Source: Setoptus koraiensis
Lineage: Eukaryota; Animalia; Arthropoda
Reading direction: 5' to 3'
Length of the DNA: 64,000 nt
Assembly (NCBI GenBank): GCA_048013815.1
Contig: CM106586.1
Location: forward strand, 15,500,001-15,564,000
The notes beneath the pieces were generated by a model. It saw nothing but the letters and a program-made list of their open reading frames with translations. It was not told where the DNA came from and did no database searches. Every line of letters starts with the position of its first letter. Position 1 is the first letter of the stretch. The translations under genes were made by a program, and so were the position numbers. Positions 1,572 to 10,460 of the stretch are shown piece after piece.

Positions 1572-3404
1572 TTATTTATTATGAAAGTTGGTTTCCAAGT
1601 GGTACACTGTTTTGAGCTTTTCATCGATGTCGTCTGGACAATCGGTCATCACATCTCGACCAGTGGAAGACTTTGGGAAAGCGATAACCTCCCTTATTGT
1701 AGATCTTCCAAGTAGCAATGAAACTAATCTATCCATCCCGATTGCTATACCACCGTGAGGAGGACACCCTGAGTGCAGAGCATCAATGAAATAACCAAAT
1801 ACATTTTGTTTCACGTTTAGGATCTTCTCGAAAACGTATTTTTGAATTTCGTGATCATGGATACGTATGGAGCCACCAGCAATCTCCTGTCCATTCAAAA
1901 CAAGATCAAAATGTTGACCAACTACTTGAGTTGGGTCCGACAATAGGAGATGTTTAGTTGACTCACTTGGAGCAGTGAATGGATGATGACTTGATTCTAA
2001 ACTTCCATCATCATTCTTTGTAAATAAAGGGAAGTTTACAATCCACAAGAATCTGCACGGTTCGTGGTAAACTTTTTCGCCCAGCAAGTGAAGCTTTCTC
2101 GCACTATTCACTCTTAGCCTACCTAGCACCGAACAAACGTTTGTTTTTGAACCTCTTGCCGTGAATACAGTAAATTCAGATGGATCTGATCCATCGAGTT
2201 TCCGGCAAATACTATCGGGGTTCTCTTTGGACGATATAGTAGATAGAGTGCAGTTAGAGTTGGTTCTTTCCATAAAAGTCAACGCTTCTTGAATTAATTC
2301 ATCACGAACTGTGTCTTCAATAGCGAAAGGCACGATTAATCTATAGGATACATCATTAGTTGAATCTTTAGAAAAAGTTTCTTGATTTGTTATTTCCTGC
2401 AAATGCCACTCGAACCGGGTGTCTGGTTTATCGGTTCCGTACATGTTGAAGGCTTCTGAAAATGACATCCTATCGAGTTTACCTTCAATAAATGGATCAA
2501 CGTTGGCGAAGCTAGAATTATTCGCTTGCACGAATGGCCAGATATGTTTTAAAAGAGATTCCACAAGACTCATTACACCATCTTGTGAAGTGAAGGACAT
2601 CTCAATATCTAATTGAGTGAATTCAGGTTGACGATCAGGGCGAGTTGACTCGTCTCTATAACAGCGACATATCTGGAAGTATCTATCAGTTTGTCCAATC
2701 ATCAGTAGTTGTTTCAGCTGCTGCGGGGATTGTACCAGGCTGTAAAACTTTCCAGGCGTCCTCGTAGGAACTATGAATTCATTTGCGCCTCCGGGAGTAC
2801 CTTTGAAGAGTGTTGGAGTTTCACATTCAACAAACGCGAAGTCATTAATCAGCTTGTTTCTGAATAGCTGATTCAGTTTGGATCTGAACCTCAAAGTTGA
2901 TTGCATTTCATTTGATCGGAGATCTAGGTAACGATATTTCAATTTGAGGTTCTCATTTGTTGTCTGGTCATCTCTAGATAGTATTGGTAGATCCGTCTTG
3001 GCAGCACTCACTATTTCTATATCATCCGCTATTACTTCGATGTCTCCTGTTGTGCATCGAGCATCTGTTTGACTTGGAGGTCTAGGTTTGACCGTTCCGA
3101 CTATTTTCACAACTGATTCGTTTGTTAGAGTTTTTCTTATTGACTTTGGGATTGTTTTCGGCAGTATAACTTGAGTAGTTCCATAGCAATCCTGCAAAAT
3201 CAAAAATGTATTTTGAAGTCGTTTATATTTGATCCATCCATACAGCATAACTTTTGATCCAACTTGTTGTGAGGTTAGCTGCCCACAATTGTGACTCCGT
3301 AAGGTGAATGCATTCGATGAGAATCCCCTGATATTCGTTAAGATGAAAGGATTCAACTTTGACGTCAAGCTTGAAAATATCGAGGCCATGGTTTTGTTGA
3401 TCAT
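1572..3404 (-). CDS. DARS2: Mitochondrial aspartyl-tRNA synthetase, intronless
   Basis: RSHNCGQL OB-fold start, LKYRYLDLR, YFQICRCYRDE..R.DRQPEFTQLDIEMSF, PPHGGIAIGMDR, IAFPK; N-terminal presequence-like segment. Confidence 0.97.
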   Translation of the reverse strand: MINKTMASIFSSLTSKLNPFILTNIRGFSSNAFTLRSHNCGQLTSQQVGSKVMLYGWIKYKRLQNTFLILQDCYGTTQVILPKTIPKSIRKTLTNESVVKIVGTVKPRPPSQTDARCTTGDIEVIADDIEIVSAAKTDLPILSRDDQTTNENLKLKYRYLDLRSNEMQSTLRFRSKLNQLFRNKLINDFAFVECETPTLFKGTPGGANEFIVPTRTPGKFYSLVQSPQQLKQLLMIGQTDRYFQICRCYRDESTRPDRQPEFTQLDIEMSFTSQDGVMSLVESLLKHIWPFVQANNSSFANVDPFIEGKLDRMSFSEAFNMYGTDKPDTRFEWHLQEITNQETFSKDSTNDVSYRLIVPFAIEDTVRDELIQEALTFMERTNSNCTLSTISSKENPDSICRKLDGSDPSEFTVFTARGSKTNVCSVLGRLRVNSARKLHLLGEKVYHEPCRFLWIVNFPLFTKNDDGSLESSHHPFTAPSESTKHLLLSDPTQVVGQHFDLVLNGQEIAGGSIRIHDHEIQKYVFEKILNVKQNVFGYFIDALHSGCPPHGGIAIGMDRLVSLLLGRSTIREVIAFPKSSTGRDVMTDCPDDIDEKLKTVYHLETNFHNK

Positions 3405-4371
3405 GATTGGGACAGAAAGGTCATGTTTTCTTCCTTTTAGAGTACAACGTAGCGTGATGGATGATTCATGAATCCATAAACAAAAACAAAGACTAGTGTG
3501 AAGATCTAACTTGAACAGCTGATAATGAAACCACCTGGATTGTCACGCTTTTTGGGAGAATTTCACATTGAAAATGAGCCGCAACTGTAGCCCCTGAGGC
3601 CAACTTGCTTGTTATGATTCACGTAGCGAGTTGGAGGAGAGTCCTACCGGAGGTTACCGGCCACGAGAATTCATTTAAATTCAGTTTCCATCGCAAATCA
3701 ACCTAACAACCTTTGTTGAAGTACAGCTGCAAGCTGAGTCCAAAGACTCGATATTATACGACAAAATATTATAAGGCAAAGTATCTGAATCTAATATGTT
3801 CTCAGCAGCTATTCGTATTTGTTTTTAATTGAATCTATGTAGCATCCCCTCTTGAAGATTATTTAGATCTTTTAACAGTAGTGTAAGACAGTTACTCTCA
3901 CTTTTTAGCCAATCTTGTCAGTTCCTCTGAGGCTTTCTCAACTGACACCGGCCTCGTCGGCCTGTAGTCAAAAAGAGAGATTGCACAACAGACCCTGTAG
4001 GCAAAGAGAGACTCGCGGATACAAAGTTGGACAAATTTTGCTCAAAATATTGTAAATTTATTAAATCAGTGTTCATGTTTATCGTCTAATAGAAATTTTG
4101 ATCGTTATACTGTAGCAGTCTAAGTCTGGGGAAGGGATCTGATGAAATTTACAACAAATCTATGCTATTCAGGGGGTACAACAGGTATGAATATATTTAT
4201 AGCTATAGGTTTAATAGAAATTATTTATATTAAAGTTACGCTTCAGGTAACGTATTAGTAGCAACAATTCTTTACATAATTGATTTAGAAGGGAGGGCCT
4301 AGTTATATTATTAATTATACTGTTTTCCTAGACTCAATGTTGGTAGATTTACTAGTGCAGTCATGATAAAA

Positions 4372-6474
4372 TTATCTATCGTAGAGGTCGTCATCAAAGT
4401 CCAAAACAAGAAGATGGGTATCTTCTGTATCTGCAGTCCGAGAACCAACAGCGCACACCAATTTAGTATTAGAGGCTCTGATTCTCCAAACGACTCCGCC
4501 TTTGCCTGCCGTTGGTAAGACGATCAGGTTCCTTATAAATTCTCCAGATTTTATGTCCCACAACTTAACAGTTCCATCATCACTTGATGTTACAACGAAG
4601 CGCGAGTTGAAATAGACAGATGTGATGGCACTGACATGCTTGTCTGTGCCTTCAAGTGTTCTCAAACATTTTCCAGTAGAAATGTCCCATATCTTGCAAT
4701 ATGAATCAGCATTAGCAGAAACCAATATGTTTGATTTGAGCTGCATCTTACTGGTCAGGCTTGTGTGTCCGGTTAGTTTGTGCTTAAGCATCCCTGTTTT
4801 AGCCGACCAGATACATATAGAAGTATCAAGAGATCCACTGGCAATAACAGTTCCATCAAATTGCAAGGAATAGATGCGGTTCTCATGGGCCTCGAGAGAG
4901 TGTATACATAATCCAGTTTTCGCGTTCCATACCTTCACTAGGTTATCATAGGCGCCACTAACTATCATGTCGTCTTTATATTCGACACAACGAACCGCAG
5001 CACCGTGGCCAGTGAATATATGTTTGCATTCGTAAGATTTAATGTTCCATAATCTCAAGGTTGCATCACGAGATCCAGAGACTACAAGGTTACCATTTAG
5101 TGCTAAACAACGGACAGTAGATGTGTGACCAAAGAAAGTATATTTAGATTCACCGGTGAGAGCGTCCCATACACGGATGGTCCTATCGGTTGATCCACTT
5201 ATAATGGTATTATCGGGGGATAATTGGGAAGACCAAACTCCACCTGCATGACCCTTCAGGGTTCTTGAACATTTTCCATTACTGGCGGACCAGACCTTCA
5301 AAGTGAAATCATCACTACCGCTGACTATCAAGTCAGAGAGTGGATTATATTGTAGGCAGGTTATTACATGCTCTTCATGGCAGCGAAGCCGCATTATATG
5401 ACTTTGTCGCGTTGAATTTGTAGGGGCCGGACCCTTTTTAGATTCCGAAGATGATGAAGGAGATTGGGGGTCAGCGTTACGCGCATCCACCGCCAAGGAA
5501 GATGGAGATGGCGATGCATCCGATGATGATTTGTTTTGACCGGGCGCTCCTGATGAGGAGGACGATGTAGGTGGTGGAGATAACCGTCCATCGTTAGTTT
5601 GATTCATGTCAAAATTTCGATTTCGCCAGTTTCGAACAATGGACATCTGCCTCAGGTACGCCGCTTTATGTTCAGACCTCTGGAAGTTACTTTCGCTTGT
5701 GATATTGTAACGTTTGTTATTGAGGGTCCGATGGATGCGTTTCTTAAATAAATCATTGAATGTTTCCTCATGATTTAGTAAACCATCTTCTCGACATTTT
5801 TCTCTCCATATTCTATTATCTTCGCATACAATCCTATAATATCGACATGTTTGAGCGGCTAGGCATAAGTCTCTAGGTTGTAGAAAACTCATAATATACA
5901 GTGCTATTTCATAAGGTACATTACGAACAATATCGAATCTCAACCTCTTATCTAAAGAATCTCTTAATTGTCTCAATCCTTCAAAATCTAACATTTGGCT
6001 TGATATTAATAAATCTAATGCCGCTGAGCGTGTGTCTGGATCCCAACTAGAGAATTTATCTGACCATTCCCTGAGAGCAGTACTTTCTTTTTCTGTATCT
6101 TTTTTCACATCGGACACATCAGAGACATCAGAATCATTCAGATCAGTGGAAGTAGATGGTGAGATCTGATTGACGGACCGGCCATCGTCGCGACGTAATT
6201 TCTTTCTAGGTGGACAACGAGATTTTGCGTGACGAACAATAGTAACAGTTGAGCCATTTGATATTATTTGATCCCTAAGATATTCCTTGCCTGTATTCTT
6301 ATCTAGCAATCTGAAATCGGTGGTAAAATCTAAATATTTTATATCGTAACGTTGCATAATACTATGCATTAATGAATCACAGCGTATATTTGCTGTTGAA
6401 AATGTAATAACATCAGGTTCTGATAGGTCAACATCTGGCAGCACTCCGACGTCTATTATGCATCGGATAGACAT
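4372..6474 (-). CDS. FBXW7: FBXW7/archipelago-family F-box WD40 protein with an N-terminal DWNN-like ubiquitin-fold domain
   Basis: D-domain ([11 protein letters not shown]...ALDLLI), F-box ([33 protein letters not shown]), WD40 repeats with the three phosphodegron arginines (STVRC, SRDATLR, AAVRCV). Confidence 0.93.
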
Positions 6475-7541
6475 TTTTCTAATAAGCTGGATTCAATGTC
6501 CAGAAATTCCCCTGGTAGGCATTCAGCGTCAACACATACAATTTCTTATTGATAATTGATAGACAGATCCTAAATCATCTATGCTGCTCCTTGTGTAAGC
6601 TTAGGTTTTAATAGTAATTACAATGATAGTAATAATAATAATGGTAATAATATAATTATAATAATAATTTGCAGAGATAATTCGCAGTAAATATTTTTAA
6701 TTTTGCACTACACGGAAAAAAAATAGCAAACAACCGAGTATTCATTCGTTTGTATTGGCATCTGAATGGTCAAACCGTCATTCGTGGTTCAACTCTATCA
6801 AGAGCGACAGCACAAAAGGTTCATTTTCTCAAACTCGAACACACCCACCAATGCATTGAATATGCTGCTTGTTGTGAAGAGCGACATCTGGTGAACATTG
6901 AATTGAGTTGCCGCAATTTTACTAATGCAGCGGGTACTGAGCCCCAGTTTGACTGAACCACCTCACTTTCTCTATGCTTACCAATCTTACACGCCGAGCC
7001 TATAGATTAATGGCTGGCATATGTCTAGGTAATTGCTATTATTAGTAACATTAGAAGCATTTTCGATATATCTCACAATCCTAGTTATTAAATAAAAACG
7101 TTGATATATTTTGATAGATCCCAGATGTCCGTTCATCATGCGCTCTTGCATTAGTTGTAACACAGAAATTACAGCACCAATGTTCCTGTTTTGTTAGAGA
7201 GATGAGCGTGCATCAGTAGTACAAGCTCGCTCAATAGTAGAATTAGTTGCCATTTGCGACATTGATACGTTTTCACAATTTTAGATAAGACAATACGACA
7301 TGACGATGATTCTCTGAACTTGACAATTTCAGCCCACCACCTAATTGGGGAACCATAGTTTTATTTATTATAACAAGACATTAGTACCTACAAGAACCAC
7401 AATGGGTTTTCCATTGAAACGAATTCAATATCTTCGATAGAAGTCAATAGGTAACCCCGCTCAATCAGTTACATTAGTCATTTTTGTTCATTAAAGTCAA
7501 ATACAATTTGGAGGCCTCGCCAAGTATATGACCCAGCCAAC

Positions 7542-9932
7542 ATGGAGCAACAACTATCTGATGATGAGTTAGAGGTAAGTAGATTCACATCTAGTAACAG
7601 AACATAAAATATTACATAATGGAATTCACTCATCATGAAGTATGTCATTTCATAATAACAACTCGTCTTTTTCTCCAGAGCTTAAAAATGTTCATGCATG
7701 TAGTCAATAATGAGATTCGTGGAACCAATAGTGGCAACATAATGTCACAAAGGAACGCACTCAAATTTCTCGTGGCAAGGAAGTTCAACATTCAAAGGTT
7801 AGACTATGCCCAGCAATATAGATATCTATATTTATACATAACCCTAATAACTAACTTTGTATAAATTGTCTGTCTTGTTACGAGAAGAGCACTTCAACTG
7901 TACCAGCTCCATGAAATAACAAGGTTGAAAGAAGGGCTAGTATCTCTAGATCCTTCTAGAGAACCATTAAAAGCGGAGTTATATTCCTCAAAGTTCACTG
8001 TACTATCAACCAGAGATCATCAAGGATCCGCAATTGCCATATTTACAGCTAAACTTCATGCCACACCAGGAAATAAGAACCGTAATACCGCCCTTAGAGA
8101 CAATAATCATAAGACTACCCTTCAAGGTATTGTTTATCAATTAGATATAGCGCTGGAAACCATCGAAACCCAAAGATCCGGAATTGTTTTTATCTACAAT
8201 ATGAGTGGATCGGAATATTCGAATTTCGATTATGACCTCTGTCAGAAAATACTCAACTTACTCAAAGGTGCCTATCCGGCTAAGTTGAAAAAAGTACTCA
8301 TAGTTTCTCCACCGTTATGGTTTAGAGCTCCGTTCCATCTGTTACGCCTGATAGTTCGTGAAAAGCTGCGTGACAGAGTTTGGATGCTAAGTACAAGTCA
8401 ACTAGTCAATCATATACCATCTGAGGCACTTCCTCTCGAATTAGGCGGCACTTTGATACATAACCACCAAGAATGGATAGAAGAATGCAAAAGAATATCC
8501 TCGGATAGATTCGAAGACCTTTGTCACATCGCATCAGCTGAAAATTTGTCCAAGATATCATTTAAACAAAATAATGGAATTTCATCTAATCAATCGATCG
8601 GGCATTCTTCCTCCGACTTTCCATTATCGGAAGAAGTGAAAGAGAGCATTATATCTTGCACCAATTCAAACTCTTTAAATCTAACGCAAGAATGTAATCG
8701 TTTGAATATAAACACCATCGAAAGAATGCCATCGTGTAAAGTACTTTCCGAAAGGACAGAGCCTTACGACTATGATGCTAATGGTATGTCGCTTGAGCAA
8801 TTTATCCACCATATAAAGGCCAAAGGAAAGAAGGGTCTACTAGATGAATACATTCATATCAAACAAAATGATGCTATTGGGTCGTTCGAGGTTGCGCGAA
8901 ACAAGTTCAACATTCATAAGAATCGATATTGTGATGTACTTTGTTATGATCATTCCAGGGTCAAGTTGGAACCTTACGACACTAATCCACGTGATGAAAA
9001 GTCTAGCGAATCAAATGACTATATCAACGCTAATTATGTTGATGGATACCGGCAACCTAAAGCTTTCATTTCAACACAAGGACCTCTAGAGAAGACATTT
9101 TCCGATTTTTGGGCAATGATATGGCAAACAAATAGTCGAGTCATAGTTATGGTCACGCGTGCAATTGAACGAGATAGGCTCAAATGCGATCAGTTAGTAT
9201 AACCTTTCTTACATTGATCATTCTTATTTCGATATACCTTTCGACCTCAGTATTTTAATAGTTTATATTCCCGTATCCTGTCTGATGTAACCGATATAGG
9301 TACTGGCCGTTACCTAATAAGAAAGTGATCGTGTGTGGCATTTTTACGATCTCTCTTCTGAGACAAGACAGCTACGACGATTATAATATTTCGCAATTAA
9401 GTGTAACTAACACAGACATAAACCAAAGTCGCGATATATGGCACTTTCAGTACACGTCATGGCCTGATTATGGTGCCCCTTTATCTGCGTGTGCTCTGCT
9501 TGATTTTCGCGATCAAGTCAATAGGAAACAATCGGAAGCGTTGACAGCATGTCTGCCCAATTATCCTCCAATAGTTGTACACTGCAGGTAATAGGGATTT
9601 CCACATAATTGAATCCTGAATCAAGTTTTCTCACTAGGTTGCTAACTTTTGACTATCTGTTTATTGCCCTATCTATCATTCAAATCAGCGCTGGAATTGG
9701 AAGATCACCCACCTATATAACACTGGACATTTGTATACAACGATTAGAAACTACTGGACTTATCGAAGTTAAAGATGTCGTCGAGAAACTGCGCGAGCAG
9801 CGTTGCATGAGTATTCAGATGCCTGATCAATATGTATTTTGTCATACTTCTCTTCTCGAATATGCGCTCAGTCGAGGTCTACTTCAGGACATTGATCTAC
9901 CTGGTTTTGATGATGAAGATGACAACTATTAA
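7542..9932 (+). CDS. PTPN9: CRAL-TRIO/Sec14 + protein tyrosine phosphatase (PTP-MEG2), multi-exon
   Basis: Exon 1 [11 protein letters not shown] (7542-7574, GTAAGT donor); exon from 7679 with KFLVARKFN; Sec14 domain; KNRY, WPDYG, HC/SAGIGR split by an intron, and QMPDQY motifs all intact. Confidence 0.93.
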
Positions 9933-9961: not shown

Positions 9962-10205
9962 CATGTTAAAAACAATTCCGGATCTTTGGTTTTCAATGCT
10001 ATGCCTAACTCTTCTTCAATGCTGCAATATGTCTAATCGATAAACAACACCTTGAAGGGTAGTCTTATGATTATTGTCTCTAAAGGCGGTATCACGGTTC
10101 TTATTTCCATGAAGTTTAGCTGTAAACATGTCAATTCGGATTTTTGATGATCTCTCGTTGAACTCTGATGAATTTAACTCCGCTATCAGCGGCTCTCTAT
10201 GGTCC
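9962..10205 (-). pseudogene. Inverted, decayed partial copy of the PTPN9 Sec14 exon
   Basis: Reverse complement aligns to ~7955-8190 (e.g. TTTACAGCTAAACTTCAT, AATAATCATAAGACTACCCTTCAAGG, CAAAGATCCGGAATTGTTTTTA), with 11-, 1- and 9-nt deletions and one insertion. Confidence 0.9.
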
Positions 10206-10460
10206 CGCAGATAACCATCGCTCATAGTCGCTGCTACTCGCTGGCGCAAAGAAAGCAGAGCAGCGCCGCCCTGACGGGTATTTTTATAATACTGTGTGTG
10301 TCGAAGGCACTTTTAGAATCTTTCAACTGGGCAACAATGATAGCCCACGCGCCATAATTGTTTTTGTTTACAGCGAGATAGACCATCATTCTCCCTGACA
10401 ATTTCCATTTTAAATTCAAAAAAAAAACATCTCTCATCTGACAGTTTTCATTTGATCATC

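Follow-up and report, generated by a model that had tools for sequence, protein, structure and literature searches.

An FBXW7-type protein of Setoptus koraiensis with a candidate N-terminal DWNN-like ubiquitin fold

A 64,000-nucleotide stretch of contig CM106586.1 of Setoptus koraiensis, referred to in full as the window, carries on its minus strand a single-exon gene (4372..6474) for a protein of the FBXW7 type, a substrate receptor of SKP1-cullin-F-box (SCF) ubiquitin ligases. The first 85 residues of this protein probably fold as a ubiquitin-like domain of the DWNN type, much diverged from ordinary DWNN domains. Few SCF receptors are as well conserved or as widely studied as FBXW7, whose N-terminus normally forms an unstructured tail that differs between isoforms and sets localisation. 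The open reading frame (ORF) has an ATG start and extends over 700 codons without interruption. A preliminary description of this DNA had reported continuous coding from the N-terminal domain through the basic patch PPRKKLRR, the pre-F-box region and the F-box into the WD40 propeller, and this continuity is borne out, with no stop along the 700 residues. The span to which that description referred, 6200-6474, corresponds to residues 1-91 of the ORF, while the peptide quoted in it comprises residues 21-81. The fusion was also found in a related species, where that description had advised looking for it, with the same continuous ORF encoded in the independent assembly of a sister species (protein P0001, locus L001; 90 % DNA identity over window positions 6652-4083).

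Evidence for an N-terminal DWNN-like domain

As judged from its sequence, the gene is a clear FBXW7 orthologue by family (F-box/WD40 SCF receptor). Comparison against solved structures in the PDB returned human FBXW7 (7t1y_B, 2ovp_B) as the best match, at E ~4e-161, with residues 363-697 aligned end to end with the human protein, while WDR5, the next natural family, was matched at E 1e-62. The F-box at residues 185-228 was assigned to Pfam family PF12937 (F-box-like; 46.7 bits versus a cut-off of 24.3; E 2.7e-12), aligns with the F-box of human FBXW7 and contains a motif common to the window protein and the mite FBXW7s. Further upstream, residues 141-300, which cover the pre-F-box segment, align with 22 other FBXW7 proteins at 37-47 % identity. 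The alignment to human FBXW7 starts only at residue 170, within the pre-F-box region (residues 141-182). The nearest named homologue is that of the eriophyoid mite Aceria tosichella, with 44 % identity over the N-terminal half. Three motifs of the degron-binding site (ghtstvRc, sgsRdatlr and aavRcv) are identical to those of human FBXW7 in the alignment, in agreement with the earlier claim that the phosphodegron arginines are intact. The conserved arginines in these motifs correspond to R465, R479 and R505 of the human protein. The F-box, the aligned pre-F-box region and a WD40 domain with three arginine motifs are the features shared with FBXW7/Archipelago/SEL-10/Cdc4 proteins, and the window protein groups with the mite FBXW7s.

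The likeness of the N-terminal segment to DWNN, previously noticed by eye, was recovered with several profile methods. When 24,736 Pfam models were compared at E-values of up to 10, DWNN (PF08783) was the sole Pfam family reported for the first 86-100 residues, with residues 19-81 matching positions 10-72 of the 74 profile positions (25.2-25.8 bits; E 1.3e-5 to 2e-5). DWNN was again the only Pfam hit in the sister protein (24.1-25.3 bits), and the E-values across both species range from 1.3e-5 to 4.3e-5. A separate DWNN hidden Markov model (HMM), constructed from ten non-redundant metazoan DWNN domains which were collected by means of a 60-residue RBBP6 fragment, scored 18.2 bits on the window domain (HMMER p ~1e-7), while the best of 2000 composition-preserving shuffles reached 10.5 bits. 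When the alignment of the two species was compared by hhalign with that of the DWNN domains, the probability was 91.4 % (E 9.3e-7; 61 columns; 31 % identity), and the RBBP6 DWNN structure 2c7h was the top match of the two-sequence profile among 177,635 PDB sequences, though at an E-value of 0.34. The conserved DWNN positions (D..TF, L..IM.R, T.EY and S.V..R) are kept, and the domain starts at M1, the extreme N-terminus, as it does in RBBP6/Mpe1. The extent of divergence is reflected in a score of ~25 bits on the Pfam DWNN model, versus 49-119 bits for ordinary metazoan DWNN domains, scores that come from a separate phmmer search in which the query was a human fragment of 60 residues. As had been noted previously, no terminal GG follows the domain. 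Because of the lack of this motif, a cleavable ubiquitin-like modifier was considered and ruled out.

The order of secondary structure elements points in the same direction, as weaker evidence. The best of the models predicted by AlphaFold2 from the single sequence (predicted local distance difference test, pLDDT, 68.5) has the beta-beta-alpha-beta-beta order of the beta-grasp fold. A Foldseek comparison of this better model against the PDB placed the ubiquitin-like domain of Mpe1 in the Ysh1-Mpe1 complex first, followed by dozens of ubiquitins. Against the Swiss-Prot models, the first four matches were mouse and human RBBP6, Arabidopsis PQT3-like and PQT3, and at least eight of the ten top matches among 2.3 million AlphaFold clusters were DWNN/RBBP6 proteins. 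These matches align at their own residues 1 to ~90. A feature search of the ESM Atlas was uninformative, with scores of no more than 0.81 and DWNN placed fourth after unnamed and CIDE-N clusters.

Several observations weigh against the assignment. The PF08783 score, while significant by E-value, lies 0.2-0.8 bits below the 26-bit gathering cut-off of the family, and the domain is accordingly filed here as DWNN-like, a probable diverged homologue rather than a curated member. The DWNN hit that the preliminary description had proposed as a check was thus obtained in terms of E-value, but falls short of the cut-off. The first strand is unmatched by every sequence profile. The structure prediction which had likewise been proposed yielded the beta-grasp order in one of five models only, while the other four have a pLDDT of less than 47, and when AlphaFold was run again on the alignment of the two sequences, the pLDDT was 56 and part of the sheet was lost. 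Finally, Foldseek also makes use of sequence, and its ranking partly draws on sequence similarity and is not independent of the HMM results.

It is improbable, on balance, that residues 1-85 represent a lineage-specific extension with a likeness to DWNN that is due to chance or convergence, or a segment that does not fold as a ubiquitin-like domain. Such an explanation is countered by the hypothesis-free nature of the Pfam scan, in which DWNN alone emerged, at E ~1.5e-5, in both species, by the margin of almost 8 bits with which the second DWNN profile exceeded the shuffles, and by the hhalign probability of 91 %. Moreover, the match spans the whole domain at the extreme N-terminus, with the conserved positions kept. 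A DWNN-type ubiquitin-like fold in residues 1-85 is considered probable, and with good confidence.

Coding status and expression of the domain

The DWNN-like domain is transcribed, and is predicted to be translated in the same polypeptide as the FBXW7 body. Comparison with the sister species gave a ratio of non-synonymous to synonymous substitution (dN/dS) of 0.13 for the domain (eight synonymous and four non-synonymous changes), 0.29 for the linker, which incorporates a four-codon in-frame indel, and 0.05 for the propeller. The methionines that precede the F-box region are M1, M36 and M40, with M161 present in one of the two species only. After M40, the next methionine is found at residue 161 in the window protein and at residue 199 in the sister protein. 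Products that include both the basic patch and the dimerisation (D-domain) region must thus start inside the DWNN-like domain. The ORF has the start context AAAA-ATG. An in-frame stop lies six codons 5' of M1, so that the frame cannot be extended without splicing, and read-through from further upstream was ruled out on this basis.

Sequencing run X5 is RNA-like, as its contigs contain GT..AG joints in the neighbouring gene (7572/7677 and 7794/7885) and intergenic coverage is absent. Three of its contigs lie along the FBXW7-type gene (4260-5190, 5212-6093 and 6179-6585), the last of which spans the domain and 111 nucleotides of the 5' untranslated region (UTR) and is unspliced. From a further RNA run, X1, only a stretch of 261 nucleotides within the WD40 region was obtained. 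Transcription of the gene as one full-length molecule is likely, though the division of the X5 contigs into three pieces, with gaps at 5191-5211 and 6094-6178, speaks against treating it as proven.

The possibility was also weighed that the domain segment is present in the genome and usually left out of the protein, through a downstream start or through removal. The RNA depth of 4.6 over 6179-6585, versus 7.2-7.3 elsewhere in the gene, the unjoined state of the X5 contigs and the short upstream ORFs in the 5' UTR, including two that are kept in the sister species (MI* at -104 and MPTRGISGH*, in the sister MPTRIISGH*, at -48), would be in favour of such an omission, as would a 318-nucleotide contig of run X3 which joins 6346 to 5740, with 605 nucleotides skipped. 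However, a protein initiated downstream of the domain would lack the basic patch and the D-domain region, considering the distribution of methionines, and the dN/dS of 0.13 indicates selection on the coding frame. The X3 joint shifts the frame and has non-canonical ends (TT..TC on the plus strand). Its depth is 3.8 versus 5.7 for collinear contigs, run X3 covers intergenic DNA and consequently looks like a DNA run, and the X5 contigs contain no joint inside the gene. The X3 joint could represent a deletion allele, a chimera or an assembly artefact, and habitual omission of the segment is very unlikely. As an aside, the conserved upstream ORFs may have a role in translational control.

Comparison with known proteins and possible function

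The window protein differs from the 22 FBXW7 orthologues retrieved, all of which start with short basic tails, in its DWNN-like head, its long branch and its genomic neighbourhood. The DWNN domains of RBBP6, Mpe1 and PQT3 (PF08783; 2c7h, 6i1d_B) share with the window domain the extreme N-terminal place, a length of ~80 residues, the predicted beta-grasp topology and the core positions. In the window domain, the sequence of the first strand is unrecognisable, and strands one and two are joined by a loop which is ~6 residues longer. Furthermore, DWNN is followed in RBBP6/Mpe1 by a zinc knuckle (CCHC) and a RING/U-box, whereas an F-box and WD40 propeller follow it in the window protein, and zinc-knuckle and RING families were absent among the 25 best of the 49 Pfam matches to the whole protein. 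With FBXW7-like sequence following the domain, the sequence identifies the protein as something other than an RBBP6 orthologue.

The N-terminal domain of RBBP6/Mpe1 binds the nuclease CPSF73/Ysh1 (PMC6436931; PMC8887125), and mutation of the interface residues D43 and R74 of human RBBP6 abolishes activation of CPSF (PMC8887125). D43 corresponds to D49 of the window domain in both the hhalign and the phmmer registers, while R74 corresponds to R81 in the former and H82 in the latter (the numbering was checked on protein P0024). RBBP6 isoform 3 consists of the DWNN domain only and, according to work cited in PMC8887125, the free domain has been reported to compete with full-length RBBP6. Like the window domain, this isoform lacks the zinc knuckle and RING, but it is free, while the window domain would be tethered to an E3 receptor.

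On the best explanation of the data, which is considered likely when taken as a whole, the gene would encode a functional substrate receptor for SCF ligases, of the FBXW7/Archipelago/SEL-10 type. Homology predicts that SKP1 is bound by the F-box and phosphodegrons by the WD40 propeller with its conserved arginines, and that the pre-F-box region dimerises. The lineage would have gained an N-terminal ubiquitin-like (beta-grasp) domain of ~85 residues, a strongly diverged relative of DWNN, with a patch resembling a nuclear localisation signal after it. The composition of this patch (PPRKKLRR) suggests that it is possibly such a signal. Parkin is an E3 component with an N-terminal ubiquitin-like domain and, by analogy with this protein, FBXO7 and RBBP6, the head may serve as a non-covalent docking or regulatory module, which could bring a partner to SCF-FBXW7 or regulate how active the receptor is or where it is located.

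Provided that the domain is real, a lineage-specific partner, or one outside the candidates below, is somewhat favoured. Docking to the proteasome or to a ubiquitin receptor is unlikely, and lower again stand a structural or stabilising role without any partner, which is rather improbable, and, last in order, binding of the CPSF73 nuclease domain. The preliminary description had suggested that the receptor might be brought to the cleavage and polyadenylation machinery. This link is speculative, being drawn from family resemblance. That the DWNN-like head still binds the CPSF73 nuclease domain, and so tethers SCF-FBXW7 to the mRNA 3'-end cleavage machinery, appears quite improbable, since divergence as strong as that of the domain speaks for a loss of the constraint that usually preserves the ancestral interface. 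Were this binding to occur, SCF-FBXW7 could ubiquitinate cleavage components or compete with RBBP6 in the manner of the DWNN-only isoform, and domain shuffling would have connected phosphodegron-dependent proteolysis directly to 3'-end processing.

The closest counterpart in design is FBXO7 (PARK15), in which an N-terminal ubiquitin-like domain and an F-box likewise occur in one polypeptide, and the ubiquitin-like domain, as a docking surface, binds Parkin and PINK1 (PMC3814724). FBXO7 differs in having an FP domain and a proline-rich region and in lacking WD40 repeats, and its homology with the window protein extends only to the level of fold class. The ubiquitin family to which its domain belongs (PF00240) was not reported in the Pfam scan of the window domain, which returned DWNN only. 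The suggestion that the window protein represents an undescribed chimeric receptor stands to the extent that a full-text literature search for DWNN with an F-box, and for FBXW7 with a ubiquitin-like domain, found no description of the combination, but the pairing of a ubiquitin-like domain with an F-box has its precedent in FBXO7 (PMC3814724). A folded ubiquitin-like domain as the head of FBXW7 would imply that the N-terminal position tolerates a new module, and would provide a natural experiment on the tuning of cullin-RING receptors by ubiquitin-like domains, with FBXO7 and Parkin for comparison. It would also be a rare DWNN outside the RBBP6/Mpe1 architecture, through which the role of DWNN could be separated from that of the zinc knuckle and RING. 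With the case confined to two sister species, its value is evolutionary and hypothesis-generating, short of deciding a standing question.

Distribution, possible paralogy and gene surroundings

The combination of domains was found in the two sister species only. A phmmer search with residues 1-95 against 1.84 billion representative proteins returned nothing at an E-value of 0.001 or better, and a word-indexed search with residues 1-100 within full-length candidates returned only the sister protein. A scan of metagenome contigs with the domain gave 134 pattern matches, none of which were confirmed. Six-frame HMM searches of the FBXW7 loci of three other species (L002-L005; ~3.9-10 kb upstream each) located no hidden upstream exon or domain, and no second copy of the domain was found in the rest of the window. 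This distribution is read here as a lineage-specific gain of a diverged DWNN-type module on an SCF receptor.

An alternative, doubtful but with an appreciable chance of being correct, is that the window gene is a diverged and relocated paralogue of FBXW7, which took on a new role after the gain of the domain, with a canonical FBXW7 encoded elsewhere in the genome. The fusion itself would still be real in this case. In a phylogenetic tree, 21 mite-type FBXW7s form a supported group, and the window protein and its sister branch outside it on a shared long stem (0.91 changes per site). The WD40 domain of the window protein is 71 % identical to those of the mite-type FBXW7s, versus 81 % among the latter. 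Both observations would fit a paralogue. The tree does not separate orthologue from paralogue, as long branches meet there. Similarly, the gene order PolE-B (DNA polymerase epsilon subunit B), one gene, FBXW7 and RNase H1 is common to the loci of three other mite-type species, in which FBXW7 is also a single-exon gene, while this order is absent from the window, where an aspartyl-tRNA synthetase-like ORF is found downstream and a SEC14-phosphatase gene upstream. Run X3 perhaps carries a variant with a frame-shifting deletion of 605 nucleotides, which would also be more in keeping with a paralogue.

Contigs with a canonical mite-type F-box, flanked by DRLRLDIISG and LSPDDLCRAA, were furthermore obtained from the same libraries, runs X2 (DNA, the probable source of the assembly) and X5 (RNA), and propeller pieces of the canonical mite type (QLRCHEDSVI and TGECLQT) from X2. 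These contigs map to window positions 5882-5919, 4685-4725 and 5342-5361. However, their DNA depth is 5.8 and 17.8 versus 110 for the window, and their G+C content 0.52 versus 0.41, and the lower depth and higher G+C content are better explained by additional organisms in mixed samples than by a paralogue. The strong purifying selection on the propeller (dN/dS 0.05) likewise speaks against a paralogue with a new role. The features of the gene are listed in Table 1.

Table 1. Features of the FBXW7-type gene, with their positions in the window
Feature	Residues	Positions	Strand	Basis or remark
Whole coding sequence	700 and stop	4372..6474	-	DWNN-like domain, basic patch, linker, D-domain region, F-box, WD40
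Probable DWNN-like ubiquitin-fold (beta-grasp) domain	1-85	6220..6474	-	Pfam, own HMM, hhalign, AlphaFold, Foldseek, dN/dS
Basic patch PPRKKLRR	88-95	6190..6213	-	Sequence reading; invariant in the sister species
Acidic Ser-rich linker	96-140	6055..6189	-	dN/dS 0.29; 4-codon in-frame indel between the two species
Putative pre-F-box (dimerisation, D-domain) region	141-182	5929..6054	-	Aligned with FBXW7 orthologues
F-box	185-228	5791..5922	-	Pfam PF12937 F-box-like, E 2.7e-12
Post-F-box linker with Ser/Pro-rich low-complexity insert	229-355	5410..5790	-	Sequence; dN/dS 0.14
WD40 beta-propeller, phosphodegron-binding domain	356-697	4384..5409	-	Pfam WD40, 7 stretches, E 7.8e-56
5' UTR		6475..6652	-	Transcribed to at least 6585; conserved in the sister species to 6652 (blastn against L001)
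3' UTR		4260..4371	-	RNA contig (run X5, 4260-5190); no X5 coverage below 4255

The Ser/Pro-rich insert comprises ~60 residues (296-355; 5410-5590, minus strand), separates the first WD40 blade from the post-F-box linker, and evolves faster than the domains that flank it. Downstream of the gene, similarity to the sister contig stops ~290 nucleotides past the stop codon (window 4083; L001:2580). Beyond this break, L001 encodes on its opposite strand a 451-residue protein that matches no Pfam family, and the window a 610-residue ORF (1572-3404, minus strand) which by eye is aspartyl-tRNA synthetase-like. Either a contig is chimeric, or the two close relatives differ here by a rearrangement. The upstream neighbour (7347-9932, plus strand) resembles by eye a gene for a SEC14-like and tyrosine-phosphatase protein (PTPN9/MEG2-like), and its introns at 7573-7676 and 7795-7884 are confirmed by the RNA contigs. 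Part of the N-terminal region of this neighbour is repeated in an ORF on the minus strand (10016-10249), which suggests an inverted partial duplicate.

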